The notes: generated by a model from the letters alone, not told the origin. Positions 14,760 through 49,104 are shown, counted from the stretch's first letter. The stretch: DNA of 64,000 nucleotides from Azolla caroliniana (GCA_043228905.1 JBHGNT010000001.1:29264001-29328000); one strand, 5' to 3'. Translations and numbers: made by a program.

Positions 14760-16370
14760 GCTCACACGCCAAGCACAAAAACGTGAAGGGAAAGCCTCTG
14801 ATGGAAGCGCACGGGCTGTCCACGAAGCAGAGGCGGCGATCTCCCAAAACCCGTAGAGAATGACCACTGAAGGAGGAGAGAGAGAGCTCGGTACACGGTC
14901 CGGCAACACTTCGTCCTCGCTAATCCACGATACCCCCATAGGCCATCGAGGCAGGCCGTTGCACCCTCGTTTTCCTCAAATTATTCTATGTCCTTTCGGA
15001 CAAAGATACTCGTTGATTCCCTGGACTTTCGATGCGTCACATCTAGTCTATTTACACTGACCGTCCTACTCCTAGTTATGTACAAGGTATTAATTAGTGT
15101 GAGAAAGTGTAGGGCCGGTTCATGCGCCCTGCTTCGCCGATTCCGCTTCTGGCCGGTTTTCTTCACGACACCGTTATATTAGTTGTAAAGGCAACCGCTT
15201 TTCTCTCAGATCTTCCCCCAATTCTCTCCCTTCAATGCCCTTTTATTCCTCTCCATCCGCGTGGCCATAAAGTACCTATCAAATCCTTACTACCTAGTAT
15301 TCCTTAACACTCAACTATTACTATGTTATTTATACACGTTTGTACACAAAAGGCAGTCTCAAGTACACCTGTGCACACCCTCGTTCATGTGCATCCGGAT
15401 ATGTTTCTCCTAGTAGTTGGAATTCCTCACAACAACGTATCCCGCAATCAATGAATTCCACGATACATAAATAGGAACCATTTGAATGCTTCTTTAGCAT
15501 ACTCATGTTCATGTTCATCATAATTTGCAATCAACACATTGCAACAAGCTATTCCTTAGAGTGAAACCAAAGTGGTTGCATCCTGAGACAAGCCATCGCA
15601 GCTCCTAACTTTGAACTATTTCAATCCTTCTTCAACATGCTCATAGTTAGCAACATGGAAGGCATGCTACCAAATGTATACATCTAATACAACACCTTTT
15701 GACAGTTTGACTCCACTCATCCTCAAAAAAATGAGAAAAACGCTCCCCAAATTTTAAAAGTAAATGAAAACATAATCAAGTTTCCTTATCACTCCTTAGA
15801 ACTACTTCATCGTCCATCTCTACCACTAACTTAGACTAAAAACATTTTCCTATCAAGATGGCTTCCTAGTAGTGTACAACAAATGTATCCAATATCCCTG
15901 TCACTCCATAAAAAATGCGTCCTCCTCCCATATCATCATCCTTCTCCAACACAAAATTATTTTTATGTTGTTCAAGTCAGTGGATGACTTCCCCAAACAA
16001 AGCCAATCCTTAAACCCCGCTCAATATCTAGTCTAATAGTATTAGTAAATGCAACATCCACCATCAACATCTGTCTATGGTAATTGCACAACAGGAGTGC
16101 ACCATAGTCCATCAACTATACAATAAAATCTATCAACCAAAACGATGTCGTGGATATCCGTGTGTATGTGTCGGAACGGGGTGGGACCAACGGGGCCTTG
16201 AACGAAGCAGTTGGTAAGAGAGGGTGAGGAGTCTTTCCGGAACACTTCGTCGGCACACAGGCTCACATGCTATCGATCCAGACCGGTCACCAGATATCGG
16301 TTGATGGGCACACATGCCCAAATATGTATACTATTTTAGACTACTGCCGGATACCGATTGATGAGCACAT

Positions 16371-16549
16371 GAGCTCAGAAACACAAATAACGCACAAGAT
16401 GGATGAAAACAGGAAAGGGAAATACTGGCTCAACACTGAGATGAGAATCAAACACAACAAACAAATGGATTAAATAACATCGGAATACAGTTGGACTCAG
16501 CCGGCAACAAAGCTTCATGCTCCCGAAGACACGCACAACCACATTGTAG
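16371..16549 (+). repeat. 179-bp target-site duplication, left copy (right copy 30491-30669)
   Basis: Ungapped alignment with 9 mismatches, all transitions; the host LTR continues after the right copy. Confidence 0.92.
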
Positions 16550-16904
16550 GGTTATGGACCTTACGTTTGGAACAAGGAGTGCGGAATGGTGGATCATCAA
16601 CGGGTGGAGGTAGGCGAAGAGGAAACACCACGCTCAATTTGAGCACACCCGAATCGAAGACGAGGTAGAAGAAAGGAGAGGGAGGTGGCATGATTAGGAA
16701 TAACAAAAAGGAAGGGGGGTGGGGAGTTAAACACTAAGATTAAAAACATAAACACTAAAACAAAAAACATAACCTGACAACTAACATACATAAATCTAAA
16801 TCTAGAAACATGAACCTAAAAATAAAGTAAAGGGTGGGGTAATTAGAAAGAAATTAAAAGATAGGGTTAAAGGGAGGGGGATTAACATACTAATTAAAAT
16901 AAAG

Positions 16905-17120
16905 TGAGAGAGAGAGAGAGATTAAAACATAAGTAAACCTAAGATTAAAACTAAAGAGAGAGAGAGAGATTAAAACATAAATAAACCTAAGATTAAAACT
17001 AAAGAGAGAGAGAGAGAGATTAAAACATAAATAAACCTAAGATTAAAATGAAAGAGAGAGAGAGAGAGAGGGAGGGAGAGAGATTAAAATATAAATAAAC
17101 CTAAGATTAAGACTAAAACA
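16905..17120. repeat. ~4 tandem copies of (GA)n-ATTAAAACATAAATAAACCTAAGATTAAAACTAAA in the non-coding unit
   Basis: Direct reading. Confidence 0.85.
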
Positions 17121-18204
17121 TGAGACTAAAAACATAATTAAAATTTAAAACGAGGGTTACGGGGAGGGAAGAGGATTACCATACTAATAAAAATGAAAGA
17201 GAGAGGTGCTATTACGAACTAGAGAAACATAATTAAAACACGATTAAAAGAGAGAGGGAGAGGGGGAGAAACATAATTAAAAACATGTAATTAACATTAT
17301 AAATGAAAAATTACATGGGGTTTGAGGTATGGTCTTATGGCAAACTAGTTTCGCCCATCACGGTGTCGTGAAGAAAACCGTCCATAGGCGGAATCGGCGC
17401 ACCCAGGCGTGGGAACCGGTTCTTCACGCGCACAAGCTCCAAGTTGTACATAGAAGCGAATTAGGAGGATAATCGGCAGGAACGGGCCCTAACACAAGTG
17501 GAGACAAAGACCGCGCGAACAGTCTTTTCGGTCGCGCGCGCGAGCGAAGGAACTGTACGAGTCGGCGGCGTAACTACGCGGACGCGTGAAGGACGGAGCG
17601 GATCCCTGTCCAAAAGGGACAGGGAATAAAGCTGACATGACGGCCTGCTCGTCGGCCTATATAAGGAGCAGGAAAGAGCTGTTGCAGGCATCTCGCGCAG
17701 AGAGGACGAAGTGCTGTCGGACCGTTTCTGGACGCTTCTCTCTCTGTTTCCTTCCTTCTTGAGCTCCATAGCTTTTCTGTGCAGGGTTCCGAGGAGGCTC
17801 GCGCTGTTTCGAGGAACGCCCGAGTGCTTCCGGCAGCACCTCCGACCGACCTGCTACCCCTTTGTGCGTCGAAGCGAACAGGCATCGGCATCTGTTCGCC
17901 GGCCTGTTCGGTTGTAACCAACCTGTGCCCCATCGAGGGTTGTAGTCGTGTTAGCCATTTTTCTTAATATACATATTTAGTCATTCGCATCTGTCTGTGT
18001 CGGTGTCTGTTCGCGTTCTCCGTGCTGAAGGGCCGTGTCCCTGTGTATCCCCGGTCCTGCGTAGCCGGTTCTCTCTCTTTCTCCTCCCTCGCTTGCTCTT
18101 TGGTTCGAGACCCCCGCGGTCCCGCCTCGTTTCCACACGCACTTGCGTAATATCTCGACATCTTTGGTGAACCCGACGTGAAAGAGGCGGCAGAAGAGTA
18201 GAAG

Positions 18205-20331
18205 ATGAGGGGGTCGGATCTTGCAGAGGCCATGGCTTCGGCCGTGGATCGGATTGTAAACGCGCGCGAGGGCACCGGTGCCCTCGACAGAGCTATTGAG
18301 GCGGTCGTCGGCACGATCGGCCGGTTCGATGGGAAGGATGCCACGAAGTATTTGGCGTCCTACGGTGCAGAGATGCTGATGCGGGACATTCCGGAAGAAA
18401 GGCGTCTTGCCGGATTTCCCCGAGTGGCGATGCCGAGCATCCATGCGGAGGTGCTCGAGGTGCGGGCGGAGAGCCGTACCTGGGAGGAGTTCGAAGGTCG
18501 GCTCCTAGAGAAATACGGGCTGGACGACGCGCTCCGGCTTTCGAAGCGAAGGTTCATGGAATGGGTGGAGTCCCCGGGGAAGGGAAGAAACGCGTCGGCA
18601 CTCCTCCGGGAGTTCGAGGAAAACTTTGCGCGCCTTTCGGCGCTCGACCGAACCATCCTGGACACGAGCCGGGTCTTGCTGTTTGTCAAGTCGGTCGACG
18701 AGTGGGATCGGGAGCAAGTGGGCCTCTTGCTGGAAACCGAAGACGGGCTCACTACCGACTGGGCGGTTGTCAAGAAAGTCTGTGGCCGTTTCGACAAACG
18801 GCGAGAATGGGCGGATAACGGGGCAGCCGGGTCGGGCTCGGTCGCAGCAAGGAAGCTCGAACCAGCGCCACAGGTGCGAAAGGAAGAGACCCGAGAGTGG
18901 TTGGAAACCGGTTCGGCTTCGACCGGCGTAGTCAGAGGCTCAACCGGAGGAGCAGCGCTGGAGGAATTGACGAGGGCGATAAAGGACCTCCAAATCGCGC
19001 AAGCCCGAAGGGAAGGTGGCGAACCGGCTCGTGACCGACGGCCGGCGGCAGGAAACAGGTGCATGTGGTGCGATGAAGTCGGCCACATTCGGAAGGACTG
19101 CGGCGACTTCGCGGAGGCGCTGAGGAACAGGGTGGTGTACCTGTGGGAAGGACGGGTGCATGCCAGCGACACCCGAAGGGCCCTGAGCCGAAACGACGGG
19201 CGAGGTGGTATGAAAAGGTTGATGGAAGAGGCGGCGGCCCGACACGCGGAAACCGTCCACTACTCGGCGTCGGCCGGCATTCGAGTCGGGGGCGGCGAGG
19301 CCCGAAGGGAAAGCAAAGCCGGATTCTGGCCGACGATGCTGGAAGGCCTTGCCGGTGCAAGGCTTAAAAGGGAGGAATCGGACCGTGTGGAGAAACGGGT
19401 ATGGGAGATGACCGGGTGGAGCGACCCGGTCGAGGAAAAGACGGGCTTCGTGGAAGCTGCTTGCCAGAACTACGAGGCTCTGGTAGAAGAGAAGCGGGTG
19501 GGGAAACCCGGGACGACCGGGCCCTCACAACGATACGAGACCCGGTCCGGCCCACGATGGGACGAAGCCGGCGAGGCCGGTACGCAAGATAAACCCCAGA
19601 AGGGCGGGTACCGTCTGGGGACGGAGATAGAAAGGACCACGGACTTACGAAAGGTCCTGGAGGAACGGATCCTCGACAGCAAGGTGGAGCTGTCGTTACG
19701 AGAGGTGCTGGGAATCGCCAAGAAGGAGTTCCATGACTCCATCGTGGACTTGGTGAAACGGAAGAGGCTGTCAACGGAGACAGAACCGGAGAGACCGGTG
19801 GAAGTGCGGACGACGCACCTAGACGACATGGCGCTGGGAGACGAGTGGGCGGAAAGCCACTATTCGAGACCACACTGGGCCCGAGCGACCACGGAAACCC
19901 CGGTGAAGATCGGCGATGTCCAGGAACCGGTGATAGCTTTGGTGGACCACGGATCGGAGATCAATTTGATGTCCATGGACTTCTATAAGAAGGGCAAATG
20001 GCCGATCAACACCAAGCACGGGTGGAAAATAAGGGCAGCAACGCGCGCCACCGAGGAACTGCACGGGGCCTGTCCGAATGTGCGAGTCAAGATCGGCGAC
20101 GTCGAGATTGACCAGCACTTCTTCGTGCAGGAGACGTCTTCACATCCGGTCATTCTGGGAGAGCCGTACATCACGGCGGCGCGAATGGAGACCAAAGTGC
20201 TGGACAATGGTTCGGCCTACGCGAGGGTCAAAAGCCAAGACGGGCGCCATTCGGTCCAGTTTCTGACGGTACGGCCGAACCACGAACGTAACCGCGATTC
20301 CCTTGGTTCCGAAAACCGAGAGGATTTTTAG
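18205..20331 (+). CDS. gag: Gag-protease
   Basis: CCHC knuckle CMWCDEVGHIRKDC; aspartic protease LVDHGSEIN. Confidence 0.95.
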   Translation: MRGSDLAEAMASAVDRIVNAREGTGALDRAIEAVVGTIGRFDGKDATKYLASYGAEMLMRDIPEERRLAGFPRVAMPSIHAEVLEVRAESRTWEEFEGRLLEKYGLDDALRLSKRRFMEWVESPGKGRNASALLREFEENFARLSALDRTILDTSRVLLFVKSVDEWDREQVGLLLETEDGLTTDWAVVKKVCGRFDKRREWADNGAAGSGSVAARKLEPAPQVRKEETREWLETGSASTGVVRGSTGGAALEELTRAIKDLQIAQARREGGEPARDRRPAAGNRCMWCDEVGHIRKDCGDFAEALRNRVVYLWEGRVHASDTRRALSRNDGRGGMKRLMEEAAARHAETVHYSASAGIRVGGGEARRESKAGFWPTMLEGLAGARLKREESDRVEKRVWEMTGWSDPVEEKTGFVEAACQNYEALVEEKRVGKPGTTGPSQRYETRSGPRWDEAGEAGTQDKPQKGGYRLGTEIERTTDLRKVLEERILDSKVELSLREVLGIAKKEFHDSIVDLVKRKRLSTETEPERPVEVRTTHLDDMALGDEWAESHYSRPHWARATTETPVKIGDVQEPVIALVDHGSEINLMSMDFYKKGKWPINTKHGWKIRAATRATEELHGACPNVRVKIGDVEIDQHFFVQETSSHPVILGEPYITAARMETKVLDNGSAYARVKSQDGRHSVQFLTVRPNHERNRDSLGSENREDF

Positions 20332-20453
20332 AGAGGACTGCCAAGGCGTGGGGCCGCGACAGTCCGGATGCTCCGGAAAAACCCCACATCTGTACGGTAA
20401 AACCGTGTACAATAGGTAGGAAATTTTGCTTCTCCGACAGCGGAGCATGTACG

Positions 20454-23400
20454 ATGGTCGGCATCACCGGCCGAGAGAAAACAAAGACGGAGGGGAGACT
20501 TCGGGCGTGCGGAGTTCTCGGCCCTGACGAAGGAATCAACGGAGCCGTGGAGGCAGTCTCCTTCGACGACACCTTGGGAATGCTGGGGAAGGTAGTCGAA
20601 GAAGACCTTAACGAAGACCGGACGATACCGGTATGTTCCGAAGAAATGTACGAAGTCATCGCGGACTTCGGTCGAGGGCTCGAGTCGGAACGGACGGCCC
20701 GAGTTAGCACCAAGTACAAGACTGTGGACCGGAAGGTGAGGCCAGTTGCGGCGCCCTTACCGGAGGGCAGCGAATCCCGAATCAAAGGGGTTGCATCGGA
20801 CCCCAGCTTACGAGATCCGGCCTGCATAGGACACACCTTCACCAACGAGACGCTCCGCGAGCTGAAGGTCGGTGGGGGCGGGTTCCTACTGCCGGCGGAG
20901 GAAGACCGGTTTCGGAGAATGCTCGGAAGGCACGGGAAAGCCTTCGCATTCTCGCCGGAGGAAATCGGGTGCGTGGACCCGACGATCGTAGAGCCGATGG
21001 TGATATTCACGGTACCGCATGTACCGTGGAATCTCAAGCCAATTTCGGTTCCGAGAGCTCACATCCCGAAGTTGATGGAGCTGTTGAAGCAGAAAGTTGA
21101 TATGGGCATTCTCGAGCCGTCGAGCGCCCCGTATTCAAACCGCTGGTTTACCGTACCAAAGAAAAACGGATCATTGCGCTTCATTCAGGACCTGCAGCCG
21201 GTCAATAGAGTGACCATTCGGAACGCAGGGATCGGACCGACCATAGACGAGTTCGCGGAGGCCTTCGCCGGAAGGTCGATTTACTCGGTCGGTGATCTAT
21301 ACTCAGGGTACGACCAGTTCCAGCTAGCCGTGGAGAGCAGAGACATTACGACGATGCGAACTCCCCTCGGCCTAGTGCGGATGTGTACGCTTCCGCAAGG
21401 AGGGACCAACTCGGTGGCCCACATGGTGAATGCGATGAACAAGGTGCTGAGGGACTGCATCCCGGACATCACCATGCCGTTTCTAGACGACATCCCGATC
21501 AAGGGATGCCCGGTAGAAGAGAAGGACGAGACGATCGGGCCGGACGGATGCCGGCGATTCGTGATGACGCACATCGACGACTGCGAGAAGGTGCTGCAAA
21601 GGCTAGAGGATGCGAGGCTCACCTTCTCGGGGGAGAAATCAGCCTTCGGGCAGTCGGAAATCATGGTGGTCGGACACTTATGTGGGCCATATGGCTGGAA
21701 ACCGTCTCCGGCAAAGGTAGAAGCCATCTCCGCGATGAAGCCCGACTGCAGCTCGGTCACGGAAGTACGAAGATTCCTGGGGGCATGCGCATTCTACCAC
21801 ATATGGATCCCGCATTACGCCCACGTTGCGGAGCCGCTATACGGATTATTGAAGAAAGGGCGAAGATTCGAATGGCTAGACAAGCACACGGAGTCGGTCC
21901 GGAAGCTGAAGGAGGCTCTTTCGGCAGCACCGGCGCTCCGAAAGGCCGTCTACAGGAAGGGCATCCCAGTGTACATAACGGTTGACACGAGTCCGACCGG
22001 AATCGGGTGGGTCGTCAACCAAGAAGACGAGGACGGCAATCGGTTTCCGATCCGATTCGGCGCGAAGGTCCTCAGTGAGCGGCAGCGAGGATACGCCCAG
22101 GTTAAACGCGAACTCTGGGGTATCGTTTCGGCGGTGAAGGCCGACAAGGACTATCTGATCGGGACAGAGGTAATCATAGAGACGGATTGCATGCCGATTC
22201 TCGGCATGGTTTCCGGATGCGCGACGCCGGACCTAGCAATGCTCAGGTGGATAGCGTACATCAAGTCCCTGGACCCGGGAATACGACACATTTCCGGGAA
22301 AGACAACGCCATGGCCGACATGCTTTCAAGGGCGAGATTCGATGACGAGGGCGGCATGGTTTCGGAGGACGAAGAGGTCGGCGTGGACTTCTTCGAGACT
22401 GCGTATGTGACAACCGACGGAACAAGCACTTCGGCGCTTAACGACTTCGACGCGAGCAAGTACGACGGGGAGTGGTTGCAGATCGGTGGGTTTTTGAAGA
22501 CAATGACGCCCGATGCGTCATGGACGAAGGACGAGGCCAACCGGATCCGGAAGAAAGCGTACCGGTTCTTTCTCCGGGATGGATACTTGTGGAGGCACCC
22601 GAAGAAGAGGAACGGCGTCCCGCTCCGGGTGGTGGCAATGAAGGAAGATCAGGAGGAGCTGCTAGCGGCCTACCACGACAGCCCTTGGGCTGGACACCGT
22701 GGAACATGGGCTACGTTTGAGAAATTGAAGGGGAAGTATTGGTGGCCGGGGCAGTACCAGGACGTGCATCGGTTCGTGACAACTTGCGAGAGCTGTCAGA
22801 TGCACTCCATAGTCCGACATCGAGACGAGCTTCACCCTACGTACCCTCCGGCCATCCATTTCAAATGGATGGTAGATCTGGTAACGATGCCAATGGGAGT
22901 AGGACAGATGCGGTACCTGGTCCTAGCGCGGGAGGATCTGACGAACCAGGTGGAAGGCCGGGCCCTTCCGAACAAAACGACCGCGGCCGTATGTCGGTTC
23001 CTAATCGAGGACGTGATATGCCGGTACGGGTGCGTCGGGAAGATCGTGGCTGACCGAGGGGAGTTGGACGCCGAAGAAGCCGCGGAGCTGTTGGACCGGC
23101 TGGGAGTCAAGCTCTCGCTCACCACTGCGTACAATCCGGAGGCGAATGGAAAGGTGGAGCGCGGACACGGGCCGATTGTCAAGGCGCTGGTTCGAGCATG
23201 CGGAGGCCGAGTTGGTAACTGGCCGCGGCTGCTACCTTATGCTTTGTGGGCGGACCGGACTACGCACAGTTCGGTAACCGGGTACATGCCGACGGAGCTC
23301 ATGTTCGGCCAGAAGCCGATCATGCCGATGGAACGGACGATCTCCTCATGGGCAACGGTCGATTGGAGGGACGAGATGAGCCGGGAGGAGTTGTTGGCCG

Positions 23401-23810
23401 CGCGTATACGACAACTCGAGCGGAGACCGGAGGACGTGGAACTGGCTGCGGAGAAGCTCCGGGTGGCGAGGACAAAGAACAAAGCCAGGTTCGACCGAAC
23501 GCACCGGCTCCGACCGAAGAAAATCGAAGAAGGTGACTGGGTGCTCGTCTACGACAGCAGCCTCGACAACCAGCACCGAGCCACACGGAAGTTCGCACGA
23601 AGGTGGTTCGGGCCTTACGTGGTACGGAGCGCCAATGACAACGGGACATATCACCTGGCGGAACTCGACGGCACGAGAGTGGCGATACCGGTTGTAGGGA
23701 AGCGGATCAAAGCGTTCAAGAAGCGACATTACGACGAGCCAGACCCGGCTCTCCTAGTCAGCAGTGACGAACGATCCGAAAACGAGGAAGAACCGACGGG
23801 CGAGGAATGA
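20454..23810 (+). CDS. pol: Pol (RT-RNaseH-IN), probably reached by -1 frameshift at ~20322-20328
   Basis: LPQG and FLDD RT motifs, RNaseH TVDTS/ETD, IN HHCC and DDE; frame is open back to the gag stop. Confidence 0.95.
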   Translation: MVGITGREKTKTEGRLRACGVLGPDEGINGAVEAVSFDDTLGMLGKVVEEDLNEDRTIPVCSEEMYEVIADFGRGLESERTARVSTKYKTVDRKVRPVAAPLPEGSESRIKGVASDPSLRDPACIGHTFTNETLRELKVGGGGFLLPAEEDRFRRMLGRHGKAFAFSPEEIGCVDPTIVEPMVIFTVPHVPWNLKPISVPRAHIPKLMELLKQKVDMGILEPSSAPYSNRWFTVPKKNGSLRFIQDLQPVNRVTIRNAGIGPTIDEFAEAFAGRSIYSVGDLYSGYDQFQLAVESRDITTMRTPLGLVRMCTLPQGGTNSVAHMVNAMNKVLRDCIPDITMPFLDDIPIKGCPVEEKDETIGPDGCRRFVMTHIDDCEKVLQRLEDARLTFSGEKSAFGQSEIMVVGHLCGPYGWKPSPAKVEAISAMKPDCSSVTEVRRFLGACAFYHIWIPHYAHVAEPLYGLLKKGRRFEWLDKHTESVRKLKEALSAAPALRKAVYRKGIPVYITVDTSPTGIGWVVNQEDEDGNRFPIRFGAKVLSERQRGYAQVKRELWGIVSAVKADKDYLIGTEVIIETDCMPILGMVSGCATPDLAMLRWIAYIKSLDPGIRHISGKDNAMADMLSRARFDDEGGMVSEDEEVGVDFFETAYVTTDGTSTSALNDFDASKYDGEWLQIGGFLKTMTPDASWTKDEANRIRKKAYRFFLRDGYLWRHPKKRNGVPLRVVAMKEDQEELLAAYHDSPWAGHRGTWATFEKLKGKYWWPGQYQDVHRFVTTCESCQMHSIVRHRDELHPTYPPAIHFKWMVDLVTMPMGVGQMRYLVLAREDLTNQVEGRALPNKTTAAVCRFLIEDVICRYGCVGKIVADRGELDAEEAAELLDRLGVKLSLTTAYNPEANGKVERGHGPIVKALVRACGGRVGNWPRLLPYALWADRTTHSSVTGYMPTELMFGQKPIMPMERTISSWATVDWRDEMSREELLAARIRQLERRPEDVELAAEKLRVARTKNKARFDRTHRLRPKKIEEGDWVLVYDSSLDNQHRATRKFARRWFGPYVVRSANDNGTYHLAELDGTRVAIPVVGKRIKAFKKRHYDEPDPALLVSSDERSENEEEPTGEE

Positions 23811-24698
23811 AGACGGGCCGGTTTTCTCCGTCCCAACTCTCTTGGCGCATACCGGAGGATGCGCGGTTAGGTGGGGGCGGATGTCGTGAAGAAAACCGTC
23901 CATAGGCGGAATCGGCGCACCCAGGCGTGGGAACCGGTTCTTCACGCGCGCAAGCTCCAAGTTGTACATAGAAGCGAATTAGGAGGATAATCGGCAGGAA
24001 CGGGCCCTAACACAAGTGGAGACAAAGACCGCGCGAACAGTCTTTTCGGTCGCGCGCGCGAGCGAAGGAACTGTACGAGTCGGCGGCGTAACTACGCGGA
24101 CGCGTGAAGGACGGAGCGGATCCCTGTCCAAAAGGGACAGGGAATAAAGCTGACATGACGGCCTGCTCGTCGGCCTATATAAGGAGCAGGAAAGAGCTGT
24201 TGCAGGCATCTCGCGCAGAGAGGACGAAGTGCTGTCGGACCGTTTCTGGACGCTTCTCTCTCTGTTTCCTTCCTTCTTGAGCTCCATAGCTTTTCTGTGC
24301 AGGGTTCCGAGGAGGCTCGCGCTGTTTCGAGGAACGCCCGAGTGCTTCCGGCAGCACCTCCGACCGACCTGCTACCCCTTTGTGCGTCGAAGCGAACAGG
24401 CATCGGCATCTGTTCGCCGGCCTGTTCGGTTGTAACCAACCTGTGCCCCATCGAGGGTTGTAGTCGTGTTAGCCATTTTTCTTAATATACATATTTAGTC
24501 ATTCGCATCTGTCTGTGTCGGTGTCTGTTCGCGTTCTCCGTGCTGAAGGGCCGTGTCCCTGTGTATCCCCGGTCCTGCGTAGCCGGTTCTCTCTCTTTCT
24601 CCTCCCTCGCTTGCTCTTTGGTTCGAGACCCCCGCGGTCCCGCCTCGTTTCCACACGCACTTGCGTAATATCTCGACAACGGGCTCATCAGTGCCAAC

Positions 24699-24867
24699 CA
24701 TAGTTCTAGCCATACGTCCCATTCGTGTCATACTCAAACGCCAATATTCGTATCATACTCATACGTGAAAAGGCTCCAAGTATGATTGAAATCCATACGC
24801 GGTACATAGATATATTATATATACATATGGTGTATATGGTGTACATAGTGTGTGTGTGTTTGAGGGG

Positions 24868-24928
<61 letters not shown>

Positions 24929-25310
24929 TGTGTGATCTAGAGAGAGAAGCCCTGTTTTGCATGTGTGAGGAGACAGTGATTGAGTGTATATCTAGACTCT
25001 AGAGAGAGAGAGAGAGAGGAGCTATGGGTTTTGTCTGTGTGAGGGAGTATGTAATATGTATATTAGATATCTAGATTTTGTAGAGAGAGAAAATCTGTCA
25101 GTTCTCGTGAGAGAGAGAGAGAGAGAGTGTGTGTATGTGTGTCAGATGTCACTTCTATTCACAAAATATTATGAATATCAAAAATTTAAAAAACTAAAAA
25201 AAAGTCAAAAAAGAAGAAGAGCCAAACGAATATCGCGTATCATACGCGTACGTTTGCAAACGTTCGCGTACGTCCAGTAAATTGGATGTACGTGAATATT
25301 AGGAACTATG
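24699..25310. mobile_element. hAT-type MITE (612 bp) with (GA)n tracts
   Basis: TIR CATAGTTC/GAACTATG; 8-bp TSD GTGCCAAC at 24691-24698 and 25311-25318. Confidence 0.9.
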
Positions 25311-25345
25311 GTGCCAACATAAGACCATGAGGGTAAGGGAGGGGG

Positions 25346-25353
25346 TTTATATA
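25346..25353 (-). promoter_or_regulatory. TATA box of the inverted non-coding unit
   Basis: TATATAAA ~34 nt upstream of the reconstructed HHR core, after a C-rich tract; mirrors 30254. Confidence 0.6.
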
Positions 25354-25833
25354 GGATTTTAGGAGAGGGGTATAGTGAGGGTGTGGGATCAAAGTTGGGA
25401 GTGGGGAGCAAGGGTGTGCTATGTGCATATGTGCACATTTAAGGGAGAAAAAGATAGTGGGATGTAAGTTTTAAGGTTTTTTAAGGATAGGGAAAAGGGA
25501 ATGGTAAGAGGGAAGGAGTGAGAGGGTATGGGAAAGAGTGTAGGGAGAAGTGAGAGAGAGGGGGAAAGGGATGTGCATATGTGCACACGTGCATGTGCAT
25601 GTTTTAAGGAAGGAGGGGTAAAGTTGTTATAAGCTAGGGAAAAGGGAATGGTGATGTGGGCACATGTGTGGGGTTAAAAAGTAAGAGAGAGGGGAAGGTA
25701 TGGGTTAAAAAAGAAGAGAGAAGGGGAAGGTAGAGTTTTAAGAGAGATGAGGGGTAGGGATAGGGATACGATTTAGGGTTTGCCTTACGGCTTTGCAAGG
25801 AGTGCGAGTCGACATACCGCTCGAATACGGAGC

Positions 25834-27660
25834 ATGTCCACTCTTGATAGCAATGGGCCCCCCGAACCCATTACTACCGTAGATGTAACTAGGACCCCCC
25901 AAAAAACTACGAGTACCCAGGTAATCTCCAATGAATCACCGCTAATTTCCCAACACTTTGAAGATTACAAGTGTGGAATAATAGCAGAGTTTAAAAGCCT
26001 CTATCAAAAAGCACAAAAAGAAAAAAGAACATACACTCGTATGTCAAACCTAAATTCGCATAATATAGCCCCTCATAGCTTGAGAATCCAACCCCCTAGA
26101 CTAGTTATCAAACACGAAGATATTAATAAAAGTTTACACCTAGAGTTTGCTTCCATTACAACACAATATAGTAAAGATCTCACTATCGCCTATGTTAAGC
26201 ATTTAGACAGCCTTGTGCATTATTATACTAAAATTGTAGATGACTTTCCCACAACCGTGCGAACAGATATACTCAAGCTTGCTAATCTCCTAAAAGCCCC
26301 CACTTGTTTTGACATAATAGAACCCGATTCAAACCCAAACTCATTTAGCAAACAACTTGAAGATTTCAGAGAAAAATTTGCCACTAATATTTTAAAAGAA
26401 TGTAATACAATAGCTCTATCATTCACTTATAAGGAAGCCTTTAGAACTGCTGCAATGCAAACAAGAGATAAAGCACAATTAAAAAACAACAACACTCAGA
26501 GCACAAGCAAGCACCATATTAGAGAGATAGACCTAGATATGGAGTCTGAAGATGATAGTGAAAAGTTAGTAGATAGTTTTGAGAAAGAACAATATGACAA
26601 ATTTCAGTTTACATCTCATCACAATAACCTTAACTTGAGAACAAACCCTAACTCTACCTCTAACTCTAACCCTAACCCTAACTTGAAAAAAAACCCTAAC
26701 TCTAGAATAAACCCTAACCCTAACCCTAACTCGAGAATAAACCCTAGCCCTAATTTCAAAACAAACCCTAACCCTAACCCTAACCCTAATTTCAAAACAA
26801 TCCCTAACCCTAACTTGAGAACCAACCCCAACCCTAACCCTTGGCCTCGAACAACAAACCCGAAACCTCTTCCACCACAAATTAAGCGTGGATCATCCAA
26901 CCACCACAACCATCCTCAATTCATCTGCAACATAAATAATAATGAAGTTAGCATGAACCCTTATCCTAACAACCTCAATCATAGAAACCCAAAAGTATTA
27001 TTCTATAGACCCAATGGCCTTTCGATAGGCCCGAACACAAACTCAGCCCACCTCCACCATAACACAAGGATAACACCAACATTCCCGAACTCCAACTTCA
27101 CCACATATGTTTCCCCTTATACAGGTCCATCGCATCATCCACCACAGGATCTCCATCATCGACCATCACAACTTTTTGGTGGTGGTGGCGGCAATGACAT
27201 CAACCACCATACGCTAGCTTGGCCACACAGCTCACACGGAGTACCCCCATCTCTAATCCATACTTTCCACTCATCGATCACACCTGTTGGTTTCTCGTCA
27301 GCCCTACAAAACCACCAACAACACGATGGATTAAAGCTAAAGACGGGTGGCGATGTTCTCGACTCGGCGCGTACAGTTGACTATAGAGGCGTCGACCTCC
27401 CCCATTCTCACCTTCCCCCCTTGCTCTCCAGCCCTCCTCTGTATACTGAGCCCCTCAAAGCCTCTCATCCCTCCTCCTTTGCCCCTCAATTTTCTTTCCC
27501 TCCTCCTACAATAGGGCAACATAATCCATCCCCCTTTCCTTATTCATGGCCACTACACCCACACCCCTTTCACTCTCAAAACCCTCCCACATTTTCTACA
27601 AATTCCTTGTATACACACACTCTCTCTCTCTCCAACCTAACCCCCTCTGTTACTTTCTAA
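25834..27660 (+). CDS. PLE ORF1: helical N-terminal half, Asn-Pro repeat, Pro/His-rich tail; function unknown
   Basis: Uninterrupted ORF (first ATG 25834) directly upstream of the PLE RT, with the same C/A-rich strand bias. Confidence 0.75.
   Translation: MSTLDSNGPPEPITTVDVTRTPQKTTSTQVISNESPLISQHFEDYKCGIIAEFKSLYQKAQKEKRTYTRMSNLNSHNIAPHSLRIQPPRLVIKHEDINKSLHLEFASITTQYSKDLTIAYVKHLDSLVHYYTKIVDDFPTTVRTDILKLANLLKAPTCFDIIEPDSNPNSFSKQLEDFREKFATNILKECNTIALSFTYKEAFRTAAMQTRDKAQLKNNNTQSTSKHHIREIDLDMESEDDSEKLVDSFEKEQYDKFQFTSHHNNLNLRTNPNSTSNSNPNPNLKKNPNSRINPNPNPNSRINPSPNFKTNPNPNPNPNFKTIPNPNLRTNPNPNPWPRTTNPKPLPPQIKRGSSNHHNHPQFICNINNNEVSMNPYPNNLNHRNPKVLFYRPNGLSIGPNTNSAHLHHNTRITPTFPNSNFTTYVSPYTGPSHHPPQDLHHRPSQLFGGGGGNDINHHTLAWPHSSHGVPPSLIHTFHSSITPVGFSSALQNHQQHDGLKLKTGGDVLDSARTVDYRGVDLPHSHLPPLLSSPPLYTEPLKASHPSSFAPQFSFPPPTIGQHNPSPFPYSWPLHPHPFHSQNPPTFSTNSLYTHTLSLSNLTPSVTF
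26625..26840 (+). repeat. Degenerate (AACCCT)n telomere-like tract encoding NPNPNP
   Basis: Direct reading. Confidence 0.85.
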
Positions 27661-27990
27661 TATTCCCCAACCTAACCCCCTTCCCCCTTTTTGTAATGAC
27701 CCCCATCCATATTTTCCCCCGAACACTTTGTATAATTCTGGTCTTACCCCTCCCCCTATTTTTAACACAGCCCCCTCCCCCCCTAATATCTTCACACACT
27801 CCCTCTCCTTTCTTAATAATTCCACACATGCACCCCCCCCCTTTTTCTCACATAATTTGAAAAATAATACCCCTCCCCTTTTTCCTAATTCTAACTCGTT
27901 TGCCCCTACCACACACCCATATAATAAATCAAACCCCCATAGCTCTTACAAACCCCCCCCTCACCCCCAAACTAAAACTCGGTCATATAC

Positions 27991-30000
27991 ATGTAGACCA
28001 AAAAACGGGTAGCGAGGCGTGCTAAACGAATTAGTAAACGTTTTAAGCATGCCTTGCACCCTTGTAAGCGTCTCTTTTACATACTAGATAGGCCCCCCTT
28101 AACTTGTGATACCTACATGTGGCTAGGTAGAACAAACTCTCATTTCCCCTTCTCCCCTTACACTAAATCACACACTAAAAAGTCAAATACTAAAAAACCA
28201 CGAACCAAATTTTGGACTCCCCTCCTTAGGAAACCTGTAATTAATAGTAGGATACACAATCACTCTGATTATACCCTCTCCAAACACGAGACACAACTCC
28301 TCAACCTAGGTTTGAAACACATCCTCCCATCTTCCCCACCTCCACCTCTTATCCTACTTAAAGAATTTGATAGCCTTAGTAGGACCCTCCGACTTAAACA
28401 CTTTTTCAAAGATGAGGATAATTCCCCCCTAAATCCCTTTAAACTACCTAACCCTAGTTGGCAACCCCCTACTAAATACATACCCCTAGAAAACATTATA
28501 GTTAAACATCAAACTCTCTTTAGTAATACACTTCATACACTCAAATTAAAACCCACTAGGATTCCACTCCACTTATTACAAGCCTTACAATCTCTTAAAA
28601 ATAACAATAGAATCATAATTTTACCCGCGGATAAAAACGTTGGAGTTTATGTTCTTAACAAAGACACATACTATAACAAAGCTGTAGAACACCTTTCTGA
28701 TTCTAATACCTATAGAGTAGTTTCCCACTATCCACTTGAAGAGTTATCATATAGACTTAAAAAGATTGTTAACAACCATCTAGGTACCTTATCCACCATA
28801 GAAGCCAACTACATACTACATAAGCCCTCAACAGGATACCAAGTATGCAATCTCTACTTCTTCCCCAAACTCCAGAAGAACCCAATGGGCTTTAGACCTA
28901 TTTGTTCATATAATAACTCTCTTTTTGAACAGACGTCTAAATGGCTTCACCACCAACTCATGCCAATCCTTCTCCTTCAAAAACAATATTTGAAAGACTC
29001 ACACTCCCTTATCCAAACTCTAGAACATCTTAAACCACCCCCTAATAGCTTTATCTTTACCTTTGATGTTGAATCCTTATATCCTAGCATCCCCCCTAAG
29101 CTAGGTCTAGAAGCCTTACGAAAAATCATTACCCCCCATTTTTCGACTTCTAAAACTAACCTTATTTATACACTTAGCGCACTCGCATTAGAATATCACT
29201 TTCTCTCTTTTGACGACGTAATTTATCAACAAGTAAAGGGTACAACCATGGGTAGTAATTTTTCTGTAGTATATGCTTGCCTTTTCTTAGCTCACTTAGG
29301 GAATTCGCAACCACCACACCCAAATCTTTGCTTTTTCACTAGATATATAGATGACGCTTTCGGAATATGGACGGGTACTAAACTCGAGTTAGAAAATTAC
29401 CTTCAATTCTATAATACCTCTACTAATAATTGTATCAAACTTACCATCACCACTTCCCCCTCTAGATTACCCTTCCTAGACTTATGGATTAACCTAGAAA
29501 ACTCAAAATTCTCCTTTAATTGCTACCAAAAGCCCCAAAATGCTTACCAATATCTCCCGTTCTCGTCAGAACACCCTCTTCATTTAAAAAGACATTTTAT
29601 TATTAATGAACTAAAATGATACCTAATTAGAGAAAGCACTCCTTTAGGTTTCCATTGAATGAAAAAACTATTTTTTACTAGACTAATTACGAGAGGATAT
29701 CACCCTTCTTTCATAAAAGAGAATTATAAAAATGTCCCCTTTAGGGTTAGGAAATCACTAATATATAGTAGGAAACCCAAAAGTACTCTTCTACCCGTTA
29801 TCTTCAAACTTAGATATACACAAGATACCCCTAAGATAGGAATTCACGACATGCTAAAAAACCTCCACGAGGATTTACTCTTAGATCCCAAACTATCTCA
29901 GATACCTAGACCTTTTGTGTGTTGGACTAAGTCCAAGTCCATTCACTCTTTTTTGGTCAAAATTAAATATAAAAGGTCATCCCCAAAATCTCTTACTTAA
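27991..30000 (+). pseudogene. Penelope-like reverse transcriptase, no GIY-YIG endonuclease; 3 in-frame stops (27994, 29617, 29656)
   Basis: LNLGLK, PADKN, FPKLQK..FRPICS, FDVESLYPSIP, QVKGTTMGS, RYIDD, PFLDL, YQKP..YLPFSSEHP, RLITRGY. ORF ends shortly after SIHSFLV with no GIY-YIG on either side. Confidence 0.93.
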
Positions 30001-30253
30001 CACTACACATTTACTTACTTATAACCCCCCACTTATGCATAACACACCCCCACTTATTACTTACCATAATCTCCCACTTTTCATAGCCCACCCCCACTTA
30101 TTACTTAGCATACACATACTTATAACCCTCCAGTCTTCTTAGCCCACCACCACTTTGTATCATTCAACTGCCTACCATTACCCCCTTCTTCTCTCTCCCA
30201 TCACTAACTCTTATTTCTCCTCTCTCCCTCTCCCTCTCCCACCTCCCCCACCT

Positions 30254-30261
30254 TATATAAA
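30254..30261 (+). promoter_or_regulatory. TATA box in PLE pseudo-LTR
   Basis: TATATAAA 30 nt upstream of the HHR core. Confidence 0.6.
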
Positions 30262-30282
30262 GCTACACCCATCTTGTAATAG

Positions 30283-30335
30283 ACCTTTGCACTGATGAGC
30301 TCATTCTTGAGCGAAACTAGTTTGCTGCATAAGGT
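30283..30335 (+). ncRNA. Type I minimal hammerhead ribozyme (PLE pLTR type)
   Basis: ACCTTTGCA-CTGATGA-GCTCA-TTCT-TGAGC-GAAAC-TA-GTT-TGCTGCATAAGGT; palindromic stem III AAACTAGTTT. Confidence 0.92.
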
Positions 30336-32691
30336 ATTTCTTTTCATTCTAATGATATTTTCTTGAGTCTCTCTCTCTCTCCCCCCCCCCCCCCCCTTTG
30401 GTACTCACAATCTATTTTCTTCCTATTAGATTATCTACCCTATTACTACGTCGCTCGCACTCCTTGTAACGACCCAACAGTTGACAATAAGAGCTCAGAA
30501 ACACAGATAACACGCGAGATGGATGAAAACAGGAAAGGGAAATACTGGCTCAACACCGAGATGAGAATCAAACACAACAAACAAATGGATTAAATAACAT
30601 CGGAATACAGTTGGGCTCAACCGGCAACAAAGCTTCACGCTCCTGAAGACACGCACAACCACATTGTAGTGGGCCTATGATCGGGAGCACACGGGCTTCC
30701 AACGCGAAACAGAGGCCTCACCACCATGCAACAGATACACAAAGTAGAAATCAACAAAGCTCGGTCCGGTAGCACTTCGTTCTCCAAAATTGTGGATCCT
30801 TCTTCCGTCTTCCACCCCTCCTTTTATAGCTTGAGGAGCGAGAGAGGAGTCGTTACATCAGGTCGTTAAGACAACCGCTTTTTGTCCTTGATTCTCTCCT
30901 CGATTTCCTCCAATCAATCACCTTTATTCTTCTCTATTCATGTGATCATAAAGTACCTATTAAATCACTCCTACCTAATATTCATCAACATTCCAAATAT
31001 GTTATTTACAAATGTTTCTACATAAAGACAATTTCGTGTGCATCCGGGCACACCCCCGTTCACGCGCATTCGGTGAGTTTCCTCCTAGTAGCCGGAATCC
31101 TTCAGAACATCCACCCCACCAAACCGCACATCCTTCGGCATGTGCCAAGTAGTGAAGCGGTGGGGATTCCAGGTCAGTCTTCACTCGTCCTCTCCCAAAC
31201 CGTCGTCGATCTGGTCCTCATCCGGCTCCTCGCCCTCGTCGACGCTTTTGACCTCTTTCTCCGGATTTAGTTCCACTTTGTGGCGTTTCTTGAAGGCCTT
31301 AATCCCCTTTCCCACACTCGGTACCGCTATCCTCATCCCGTCGAGCTTCGCAAGGTGGTACATCATATTGTCATTGTTGCTCGTCACCACATACGAAATG
31401 AACCACCTCCTCGCGAACTTCCGGGTCGACCGATGTTGGTTGTCAAGGCTGTTGTTGTAGACCAGCATCCAGTCGCCTTCCTCGATCTTCTTCGGTTGGA
31501 GTCGGTGCATCTGGTCGAACCGGCCCTTGTTCTTCTTCCTCGCCTCTTCCACCATCACCATCGCTCGCTCCATGTCCTCAGGCCTTCGCTCTAGCTGTCG
31601 GATCCACGCTGTCAACATCTCCTCCTGACTCATCTCGTTCGACCAGTCGATCGACATCCATGAGGCTATTGTCCACTCCACCGACATAATCGGCTTTTGC
31701 TCGAACATGAGTTCGACTGACATGTATCTTCCTGATGCATCCATACCAGCAGATCACGTCTTTGATTAGGAACCGGCATACCGCTGTTGTTGTCTTGTTC
31801 GTCAGGTCCTCTCTTGCAAGCACCAGGTACCGCATCTGTCCCACCCCATTGGCATCGTCACGAAATCAACCATCCACTTGAAGTGAATGGTCAGGGGTAA
31901 GTCGGGTGCAACTCATCGTGGTACCGGATCGCTGAATGCATTTGGCAACTCTTAGACGTCGACATGAAGTGTTTCACATCTCTATACGGTTCCGACCACC
32001 AATACTTCTTTTTCAACTTCTCGAACGTGGCCCATGTTCCCTAGTGTCCAGACCAGGGACTCTCGTGGAACTCCGACATGACTATTGCCTGGTCCTCTTC
32101 CTTTGTCACCACTCAGAGTGGTGTGTTAGTCCGCTTCTTTGGATGCTGCCAGATCTTCCCGTCTTGTAGAAAGAACTTGTATGCCTTCTTCCGGATCCAA
32201 CTCACTTCTTCCTTTTTCCACGATGTGTCTAGTGACATAGTTGTCGTGAAGATCCGTCACTAGGCGCGGATCGCGAGGCGGAACCGCCGGGGTTTTGGAC
32301 CGGAAGGATCGAAGTTCTCACCAAGCTTAGCGAGAAAGTATTTAAGATAGATTGAGAGAGAGAAAAAGATTAAGATTAAGCGCTTGACTTAGATTGAGAA
32401 AGATTGATATGGCCAAGAGAGAGATATTGAGATTAAGATTTTAACTCTTGATTTAAGAAACAAGATATATCATCAATGAGTTTTCTTCTTATTAATTTTC
32501 TTAGTTCATACATGGATCCATAATACATTTTCATCCATCTTTTTATAGATGCCCCCATGCATATGATGCATGTTTGCCATTTGGCGCTCGTGTATTACAT
32601 GTGGTGCATGATAACCATGTCACTCATTTTAGCTCTCATGCATAAGAATTTACATGTAAAAGTACGATGATAGAAATATAATTTTAACTAA

Positions 32692-46300: not shown

Positions 46301-49104
46301 AGGAGACGGCTTACGCGCAAAGAGAAAGGCAAGAAGAAGGTGTCGGATTCCGGCACGGATAGGAACGAGTCAGACCGACGCGAGTCCGACTCCGAGGGAA
46401 CCAGTGACGGGTCTTTAAAGGTGAAGTCTGCGTCGACCGAGAAGGCCTCAACATCGGCTAATGTGAGATTACGTCGATCTACCCGCCAGAAGAATCCTGT
46501 TTTGCGGTTCGGATACAACGAGTACATGGCGCATCACTATGCATACATGACCCATATAGCGGAAGTGCGTGAGCCGGAGAGCTACACAGAAGCGGCGAAG
46601 GACGCGAATTGGCGCACCGCAATGGAGGAAGAGATGCACGCATTGGCGGAAAACGAGACTTGGGATCTGGTTGACGCACCGAAGGGTGTGAAGCCGATCG
46701 GATGTAGGTGGGTGTACAAGGTCAAATACAACACCGACGGCTCGGTCAACCAATACAAGGCCCGGTTAGTGGCAAAAGGTTACACGCAGAAACACGGCAT
46801 CGACTACGATGAGACGTTTGCGCCGGTCGAGAAAATGACGACCATCCGTGTTTTGCTCGCAGTAGCTACGGTGAAAGGGTGGCACTTACATTAGATGGAT
46901 GTAAAGAATGCATTCCTGCAAGGTGACCTTGAGGAACAGGTGTACATGGTACAACCCCCCGGATTTCACTCTGGAACGAACTCCTTGGCAGTATGCCGAC
47001 TAAAGAAGTCCCTTTACGGACTGAAGCAAGCCCCGCGTGCCTGGAACGCGAAGATCACGCAACAACTGCGTCGGATGGGCTTCATCACGTCAAAATCAGA
47101 CTCTTCCCTGTTCATCCGGAAAGGTCGACTTGGACCGGTTAGTATTTTACTATATGTTGATGACTTGGTCATCACCGGCGCCGACCTAGGTGGAATCGAC
47201 CGTGTGAAGCTCCAGCTTGCGGCATTGTTCGACATGAAGGATTTGGGGGACCTTCATTACTTCCTCGGGATCGAAGTGATCCGTACCCCCGAAGGCATAT
47301 TGATCAACCAACGTCATTACGTGCTAAGTATGCTCTTCAAATTCGTGATGGCCGACTATAAGTCCGTCCCGACTCCTCTGGACATAACCGTCAAGCTTCG
47401 TCCCGATATGGGAAAGGTATGCGACCCGACGAGGTTCCGACAAATTGTCAGAAGCCTCATATACTTGACCATCACCCGACCCGACCTCAGTTATCCGGTC
47501 AGAGTGATCAGTTAGTTCATGGCGCGACCTACCGAGGAGCACCTTCAGTGTGCGCGACGCATACTTCGGTATGTCAACGGCACTAAGGACCGGGGACTGC
47601 TATATCGGACCGGTGCAGTCGCGCAGTTAGTCGGCTACACCGATGCTGATTGGGCTGGCAACGCCGCCGATCACCGATCCACGTCTGGATACGCGTTCTC
47701 CCTCGGGAGTGCCGCGATCGCGTGGAGCAGTAAGAAGCAGCCGACAGTTGCACTGTCGAGCATCGAAGCTGAGTACCGAGGAGCGGCTGTCGTGACATGC
47801 GAAGCCATATGGTTGAAGCGGCTACTTAAGGACCTGCAAGAGGAGGTGTCAGATCCGACAACGATCTACTGCGACAACCTCAGCAGCATCCAGCTCGCGA
47901 AAAATCCTGTTTTCCACGCACGGACCAAGCACATTGAGGTGCACTACCATTTCGTCCGTGAGCGTGTCCTTTCCGGTGAAGTCGAACTTCAGTACATTCT
48001 GACGGATCGGCAGACTGCCGACATCTTCACCAAGCCTCTTGGTCTGGACAAGTTGCGGCAATTCTCCGGTGCGCTCGGGTTGCGTCACCTCGACGTGCCA
48101 AACTTGAGGGGGAGAACAGTCCCGAATGACCAAGCAAGGCAGCATGAAAGGAGCGGAGACCGCGACACCAAGTCGGTTGACTCGATTGTCGAGTTCGACT
48201 TTGGATCGGCTGAAGAAGCTGAGGGTGGACCCGCGGAAAAGTCCGAAAGCGGACAGAAGGGGAACAGCCGAAGGAGAGAGCCAAAGCCAACCACAACCAC
48301 GCATGGGGAAGATGACGTCATCGAGGGCGAGAAGACCGAAGACAAGTTGGAGACAACCAACTCGGACGAGAGCGAAAACCGATCGGAGGTAGCCGAGTCA
48401 GTACAGATGTTTGATTCAGATACGCTGAATCAACCGAGGCCCAAGTGGAAGAAAAGGCAGCAGGAGAAGCATCAACACCGCAACAGTAGAAGAGCTTATA
48501 AGGGCCACATGAGCAGACAAGCCGACCAGAAGGGTCGAAGCACGTGGAGTCGAACAGGTCGAGGAGCGCGAGCGAGGCATGAAGCCAAGAGGAACCGGAG
48601 TTGTGAGCCCAAAGATCCCGAAGAGCCTCAAGTTGAGCTTGAGGGGGAGTGTTGAGAGACAAGCTCAACATTGGCCTAATCGGCTGAAGAACCCGAGGAC
48701 CGGATCGGTTGGGACCGATCGGTTAGGCCGAATGCGTAAACCGGTACGCAGACCGGTGCGTAGGTAGGGACGGATCGGTGCGTAAACCGGGAGGTCGTTA
48801 GGAAAGATATTCCGTGAGGAATATATTTGGGAGTTAGTGTAGGAGCTCTTAATGAGCATTGAAGTACTATCAGTACTTCTGTCAGTCCTTCTAGGACTTG
48901 TATAAAAGTGTTCATTGAACACACATATGTATAGAGTGTGGTGAATAGAGATTTAGTACTGCTGTTGAATATAGTTCTTGTTTTTCCTCTCTCACTCTCT
49001 CTGTCTCTCCCGCGTATACTGCGTAAGCTCAAGTTCTCCATTAAACCTGAGTTTTCTTCCTTCTGTTCCGTCTTCATACTTGCTTCCGCACGTTACTTTT
49101 TGCA
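43330..49104 (+). mobile_element. Full-length Ty1/copia element with several nonsense mutations
   Basis: LTRs 43330-43750 and 48650-49104, TSD TTTTT, PBS TGGTATCAGAGC at 43751, PPT GAGGGGGAG. gag-PR-IN-RT(LYVDDL)-RH(DADWAG) 43823-48655. Confidence 0.97.

Follow-up and report, generated by a model that had tools for sequence, protein, structure and literature searches.

Why should one 11-nt box, CGCACTCCTTG, lie near three retroelement unit ends, on both strands, within a single stretch of plant DNA? The stretch, 64,000 nt of Azolla caroliniana (GCA_043228905.1 JBHGNT010000001.1:29264001-29328000), is called the window here, and coordinates are counted from its first letter. Each box lies in one of three units: a coding Penelope-like element (PLE), which we call P, and two non-coding units, M1 and M2. 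PLE reverse transcriptases (RTs) are the closest relatives of telomerase, and we know of no account of how they choose a template or where on it they start. The initial annotation read the boxes as inverted repeats bracketing the coding unit, and proposed two-strand or panhandle templating. We find that each box belongs to a unit of its own, and that they do not represent the two strands of a single one. We consider it probable (roughly 70%) that three different retroelement RNAs were copied into a single chromosomal break and that each box marks the 3′ end of one of these RNAs.

Three boxes at three unit ends

Exact copies of the box are found at three sites in the whole window (Table 1), against a chance expectation of 0.03 for a given 11-mer in 64 kb; the observation of three sites on both strands is correct and far beyond chance. 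The sole site with one mismatch, at 46977(+), falls within copia-like coding sequence and is unrelated, and a covariance model scan of the window found no further copies of the module described below. The two minus-strand sites also align past the box, as the initial annotation had noted, sharing N6-7, CGTAAGG, N2-5 and AACCCTA.

Unit ends were set by where homology to relatives stops, and each box in the window lies 23-31 nt from the end of its unit. The homology of P to its relatives ends at 30490-30495 and that of M2 to a related contig, L021, at 25772, both giving a box-to-end distance of +24. The homology of M1 to the contig L040 ends at 16543; here microhomology of up to 8 nt between unit and flank makes the joint imprecise, and the distance can be given only as a range, +23 to +31. 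The proposed spacing of about 24-26 nt therefore holds for P and M2, and for M1 only within that range. Telomere-like strings beside these ends were considered as telomerase-added repeats and rejected. At 16547, the 'TAG' of 'TAGGGTT' is part of the duplicated flank X, whose other copy, X′, likewise ends in ...CATTGTAG, so that this is not a clean telomeric repeat; 25772-81 is the family's own tail.

Together, M1, M2 and P form a composite flanked by X and X′ as a 179-bp direct repeat. M2(-) is joined head to head with P(+), and their homologies overlap only by the 3 nt GAC at 25893-25895. Boxes stand on both strands only because three truncated elements have been joined head to head. The composite is interstitial, placed between the two X copies with long terminal repeat (LTR) elements on either side in the window, and not chromosome-terminal.

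Table 1. The composite insertion and its parts in the window
Feature	Position	Strand	Remarks
X, left copy of the 179-bp direct duplication	16371..16549	+	95% identical to 30491-30669; ends ...CATTGTAG
M1 3′ part, non-coding hammerhead-bearing unit	16550..17363	-	86% identical to L040:1-436
M1 3′ module	16542-16593; box 16573-16583	-	41 bits (covariance model)
Gypsy-order LTR retrotransposon, later insertion splitting the M1 hammerhead	17364..24678	+	LTRs 797 bp, 99.9% identical
M1 hammerhead core piece between two later insertions	24683..24698	-	Reverse complement carries the first core block, CUGAUGAG
612-bp insertion inside M1, resembling a miniature inverted-repeat transposable element (MITE)	24699..25310		Inverted ends 10/12 matching; not in L040
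M1 5′ part	25311..25768	-	87% identical to L040:949-1389
M2, last 124 nt of a unit of the family bearing a 5S-rRNA-like stretch	25772..25895	-	84-90% identical to M2 relatives
M2 box	25796-25806	-	Module 47 bits (covariance model); telomere-like end tag CAAACCCTAAA (plant type)
P, coding Penelope-like unit without endonuclease, 5′-truncated	25893..30490	+	92-96% nucleotide identity to L001-L007
P 3′ module	30446-30497; box 30456-30466	+	Downstream of hammerhead core, in C/T-rich tail
X′, right copy of the 179-bp duplication	30491..30669	+	95% identical to X

The idea that the coding unit has functional inverted terminal repeats, with box-ended sense and antisense RNAs serving as templates or forming a panhandle, starts from a real match: the M2 and P boxes have 18-19 nt in common, GTCG(A)CTCGCACTCCTTG, at 25796-25815 and 30449-30466. 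But the left arm and the surrounding 100 nt are the 3′ end of another repeat family, the foreign non-coding M2, and after the box it follows an M-type tail rather than a P-type one. Moreover, P is 5′-truncated at the joint. The initial ~215 nt of the family, with the start of open reading frame 1 (ORF1) among them, are missing from it, as judged from the absence of any counterpart to the 218-nt 5′ region of its relatives. That region is unrelated to window 25775-25892 and holds no inverted box, an absence upstream of ORF1 that the initial annotation had itself named as refuting its model, and the five related coding families have no inverted module. Because the inverted box belongs to M2 and the relatives of P are without it, nothing calls for antisense RNAs or a panhandle, and we regard functional inverted repeats as highly improbable.

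A conserved 3′ module in coding and non-coding families

Protein searches led to 19 contigs in environmental assemblies, whose DNA apparently derives from the same plant or a close one. Copies of family A, with a nucleotide identity of 92-96%, are arranged head to tail, the 3′ end of one unit running directly into the 218-nt 5′ region with the ORF1 start ATGGAGG. Five coding families with 63-96% RT identity carry the box, as CGCACTCCT(T/C)(G/A), on the sense strand between the hammerhead motif and the next ORF1 start, and the sequence around it has diverged among them. All module matches of the covariance model in L001-L014 are likewise on the sense strand.

Across eight families, five coding and three non-coding, the box is 95% pairwise identical and its flanks 30-39%; 188 kb of plant-derived DNA contains 24 exact boxes where 0.09 are expected. 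The full module consists of the box, a hairpin of 3-4 bp that starts 4-5 nt after it and is capped by a tetraloop (CAAC, UUAC, AUAC, GUAA or GCAA), and a tail of 10-14 nt. The third pair of the hairpin (27-36) is A-U in eight, G-C in seven and G-U in one of 16 sequences and is never unpaired, and the covariation score exceeds that of 497 of 500 shuffles and of every slid control.

The distance from box to unit end is +24 in the P families and in M2a, and +26 in M2b, with M1 ranging as above; this fixed distance occurs beside at least nine different flanks. Since the box has kept its distance from the end in three kinds of element whose bodies are otherwise unrelated, the comparison supports the box as a conserved 3′-terminal cis signal, probably for RT recognition or 3′-end definition. 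The module is shared by a clade of plant PLEs without an endonuclease and by two kinds of non-coding passenger, M1 and M2. The proposal of an RT recognition or initiation element thus survives as a conserved 3′-terminal cis element in eight families, and falls where it extended to the 3′ ends of antisense RNAs, the boxes being on the sense strand only.

A side feature of these families is a common 5′ leader, ATGGAGG N10-13 GGAG N3 GG N ACCCA, found in coding units and in non-coding M1 (L001, L014, L009, L010, L040). A candidate pairing of the box with the conserved GGAG of this leader amounts to only 4-5 bp and is invariant.

The coding unit is a Penelope-like element without an endonuclease

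In P, the ORF1 frame extends to 27660 and is followed by an RT frame at 28054-30000 with two in-frame stops. The RT is 96% identical to P0001, an intact protein of 627 aa. It has 139 homologues, the nearer of which carry DUF8422 and HTH_animal, whereas the more distant ones (about 33% identity) are PLE proteins of 700-830 aa with a GIY-YIG domain (PF01541). Homology of its RT to PLE RTs places P among the Penelope-like elements, and the RT ORF of the window itself gave no match in a Pfam search. No GIY-YIG endonuclease was found: P0001 stops at 627 aa without PF01541, and Pfam detects none in the ORFs of the window. Within ORF1, at 26612-26840, degenerate AACCCT-type tandem repeats are read as Asn-Pro runs, and their copy number differs in relatives.

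The putative hammerhead core of P lies at 30282-30335, and the core blocks (CUGAUGAG, then CGAAAC) with their flanking helices are seen in P, in M1 and its relative L040, and in all coding relatives. Rfam at gathering thresholds returns nothing in the window; a permissive search of 30230-30500 returns a weak hammerhead match alone (17 bits, E = 0.42, below gathering). A TATA box is present at 30254-30262, and every family, the distant ones among them, has one 35-50 nt upstream of the core (also seen in L009, L016, L019 and L040); this placement predicts transcripts that start at the ribozyme.

Two kinds of non-coding passenger

When the collection was scanned for the box with CGTAAGG after it, 38 loci matched; nine of them came from the assemblies of the RT relatives and share flanking homology, and the other 29 were unrelated chance matches. 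When M1 and M2 were compared with the coding loci by BLAST, only low-complexity matches and the hammerhead were found.

L040 is an intact tandem M1 unit with an ATGGAGG leader, a hammerhead and a box-bearing tail. The window M1 matches it from position 949 on and so lacks about 510 nt of its 5′ end. M1 appears to be an internally deleted element that has kept its hammerhead. At L040:2041-2240, the module lies within a 148-nt tandem duplication, giving two to three boxes per M1-family unit, with one in the window copy.

M2 units are about 430 nt long, occur in tandem arrays and start with a PLE-type leader; they have no recognizable ORF or hammerhead. The window segment 25772-25895(-) matches their last ~124 nt (L021, L023, L041, L042, L047, L048, L056). 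A stretch resembling 5S ribosomal RNA (rRNA) lies between the PLE-type leader and the PLE 3′ module (three units in L056, and L048, L041, L023 and L042), of which the window retains only the last bases, at 25880-25895. With the Rfam 5S_rRNA model this stretch reaches 39.7 bits (gathering threshold 38), with a 27-nt internal gap. Compared with a short interspersed nuclear element (SINE), M2 has a 5S-like match above gathering and a shared tail module, but also a PLE-type leader and tandem arrays. M2 is probably an element built around a 5S-rRNA-like stretch, and may be a 5S-derived passenger of a PLE. One contig whose M2 unit has an inverted 5S-like arm also has the 5′ part of U1 small nuclear RNA at its end (L042:8004-8055).

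The tails of M2a end in CAAACCCTAAA, and L021 continues as CCCTAAA repeats. Reverse-complement telomeric repeats at the 3′ terminus are found in M2a and in a distant, boxless coding family (L016, which terminates in CCCTAAACCCTAAACC), and not in the P families or M2b. In L047, an M2 end is joined directly to a P-type module fragment of ~45 nt, an arrangement suggestive of successive switches to the 3′ ends of RNAs.

How the composite may have formed

Because the elements encode no endonuclease, they must use free DNA 3′ ends. Synthesis of complementary DNA (cDNA) would start about 24-26 nt past the box, on any free DNA 3′-OH, with the help of a few bases of pairing. The module would be read either by the RT of the element or by whatever machinery forms the 3′ end of the RNA. 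First, the top-strand 3′ end of X would prime on M1 RNA; the L040 tail and the end of X can be seen to pair over as many as 8 nt. Second, after an early stop on M1, the enzyme would switch to the telomere-like 3′ tail of M2 RNA. Third, the bottom-strand 3′ end of X′ would prime on P RNA and, finally, the two cDNAs would meet at the 3-nt overlap. Two-sided priming of this kind would leave the M boxes in minus and the P box in plus orientation, and the geometry agrees with a single break whose two 3′ ends both primed. It is plausible that the enzyme switched from one RNA template to another: the template jumping suggested by the initial annotation fits the chained 5′-truncated units here and in L047, once its antisense templates are set aside. 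The telomere-like tails of M2a also fit the telomere priming known for this class (PMC8557442, PMC6431247).

The constancy of the module invites another explanation, in which box and hairpin form a signal for RNA 3′-end formation, with termination or cleavage about 25 nt downstream, and the RT starts at any 3′ end. A constant 24-26 nt to the end despite unrelated family tails would be expected of such a signal, and poly(A) is absent from the copies. However, the module matches none of the known processing signals, Rfam giving only the weak hammerhead in this region, and the sequence is read through in tandem arrays; we consider this explanation unlikely. A role mainly in the 5′ leader, in translation, packaging or strand transfer, would make the presence of the box at 3′ ends a mere result of tandem design. 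The box does stand just upstream of the conserved ATGGAGG start in all tandem coding relatives, and the TATA box ahead of the hammerhead predicts transcripts that include this upstream box. Yet non-coding M2 units, which have neither a recognizable ORF nor a hammerhead, and isolated 5′-truncated fragments of 45-124 nt keep the distance from box to 3′ end, which makes a mainly 5′ function rather improbable.

Several points weigh against copying of three RNA 3′ ends into one break. X and X′ differ by 5%, so it is the geometry that argues for a single event. The tandem arrays also place the box 47-68 nt upstream of the following ORF1 start, and a function in the 5′ leader is conceivable there. 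The related contigs derive from environmental assemblies. The families are related, so that covariation counts are not independent events, and the tiny hairpin has folding-energy z-scores near 0 against shuffled sequences (minimum free energy, 16 module sequences), leaving covariation as its support. Finally, the box was not found in coding families at 42-49% RT identity (L016, L017, L019) and is therefore specific to one clade; the covariance model likewise finds no module in the distant families L015-L019.

Nevertheless, copying of three RNA 3′ ends into one break remains our preferred account, and it can be extended, tentatively, to the whole system. It is possible, if somewhat doubtful, that box and hairpin together are the template-recognition element of a telomerase-related RT without an endonuclease, and define a mobilization network that joins autonomous PLEs with deletion derivatives bearing the hammerhead and with SINE-like passengers of 5S rRNA origin. 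The order in M2a, from a helix to a telomere-template-like 3′ terminus, would then resemble a minimal telomerase RNA.

Later insertions and the target region

Two later insertions interrupt M1. The gypsy-order element encodes RVT_1, RNase H and integrase domains and is flanked by the target site duplication ACGG at 17360-63 and 24679-82. The MITE-like element, with an 8-bp duplication, GTGCCAAC, at 24691-98 and 25311-18, sits 16 bp from the LTR element, both within the M1 hammerhead. The short piece left between them completes the hammerhead core that L040:1389-1427 holds intact. Outside the composite, 15172-15434 and 30851-31109 (1 kb to its left and 0.2 kb to its right) show a weaker similarity of 72%, which indicates that the target region is itself repetitive.

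Significance and comparison with known systems

The box itself appears to be undescribed. A limited literature search found no description of it or of a PLE-mobilized 5S-like passenger, and only hammerhead and telomere-complement tags are described in the literature searched. As a short element, sharply conserved, set at a constant distance from the 3′ end and common to unrelated passengers, the box is a concrete target for binding and initiation assays. The result also removes the tempting but wrong idea of two-strand or panhandle templating, and would provide a case, at sequence level, in which an element lacking an endonuclease inserted by break priming on several RNA templates.

The proposed course of events recalls L1 twin priming, attributed to Ostertag and Kazazian in 2001, in which both 3′ ends of a break reportedly prime and head-to-head cDNAs are joined by microhomology. 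The head-to-head cDNAs and microhomology joint are alike; here, in contrast, different RNAs would have been used on each side, with an extra template switch and a long, 179-bp duplication.

Within PLEs, partial tandems often have an inverted 5′-truncated copy at the 5′ end (pseudo-LTR; PMC8557442), so the arrangement seen here, contrary to what the initial annotation suggests, has a described counterpart. In both, an inverted 5′-truncated unit abuts the 5′ end of the coding unit and produces short flanking inverted repeats. However, the inverted arm here comes from other, non-coding families, only the 18-19-nt module is repeated and no endonuclease is encoded to resolve an intermediate.

Non-LTR retrozymes of animals are regarded as PLE derivatives that are not autonomous (PMC7229834; bioRxiv 10.64898/2026.07.22.740005), and M1 resembles them in being non-coding, forming tandems, carrying a putative type-I-like hammerhead and being related to the PLE terminal region. 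It differs in that the host is a plant and the partner has no endonuclease.

Sharing of 3′ ends is also described, between non-autonomous and autonomous Chlamys PLEs (PMC8557442) and, as 3′ tails, between long interspersed nuclear elements (LINEs) and SINEs (PMC5786205). As in those cases, an autonomous element's 3′ module would be borne by bodies unrelated to one another, among them one of small-RNA (5S-like) origin. In contrast to the LINE/SINE pairs, the partner here is a PLE without an endonuclease and the shared part is only about 50 nt, the 11-nt box plus hairpin; unlike classic SINEs, M2 units retain a PLE-type 5′ leader.

The closest comparison is with the endonuclease-deficient PLEs, which include Athena, Coprina and Selaginella elements (Gladyshev and Arkhipova 2007, as cited in PMC8557442, PMC4209133, PMC6431247); plant PLEs that lack the endonuclease and have hammerheads are known from Selaginella (PMC4209133). 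Common to these and to the elements described here are a PLE/TERT-related RT without GIY-YIG, an ORF1 upstream of it, a putative hammerhead within the terminal repeats, head-to-tail arrays with frequent 5′ truncation and, in M2a and L016, a telomere-complement 3′ tag. The P families, by contrast, have no telomere tag, and the insertion is interstitial with a 179-bp duplication. In the rotifer (Athena) model, the hammerhead fold directly adjoins the telomere-complement stretch (PMC6431247), whereas here the hammerhead lies 130-800 nt upstream and it is the box with its hairpin that adjoins the 3′ end instead.

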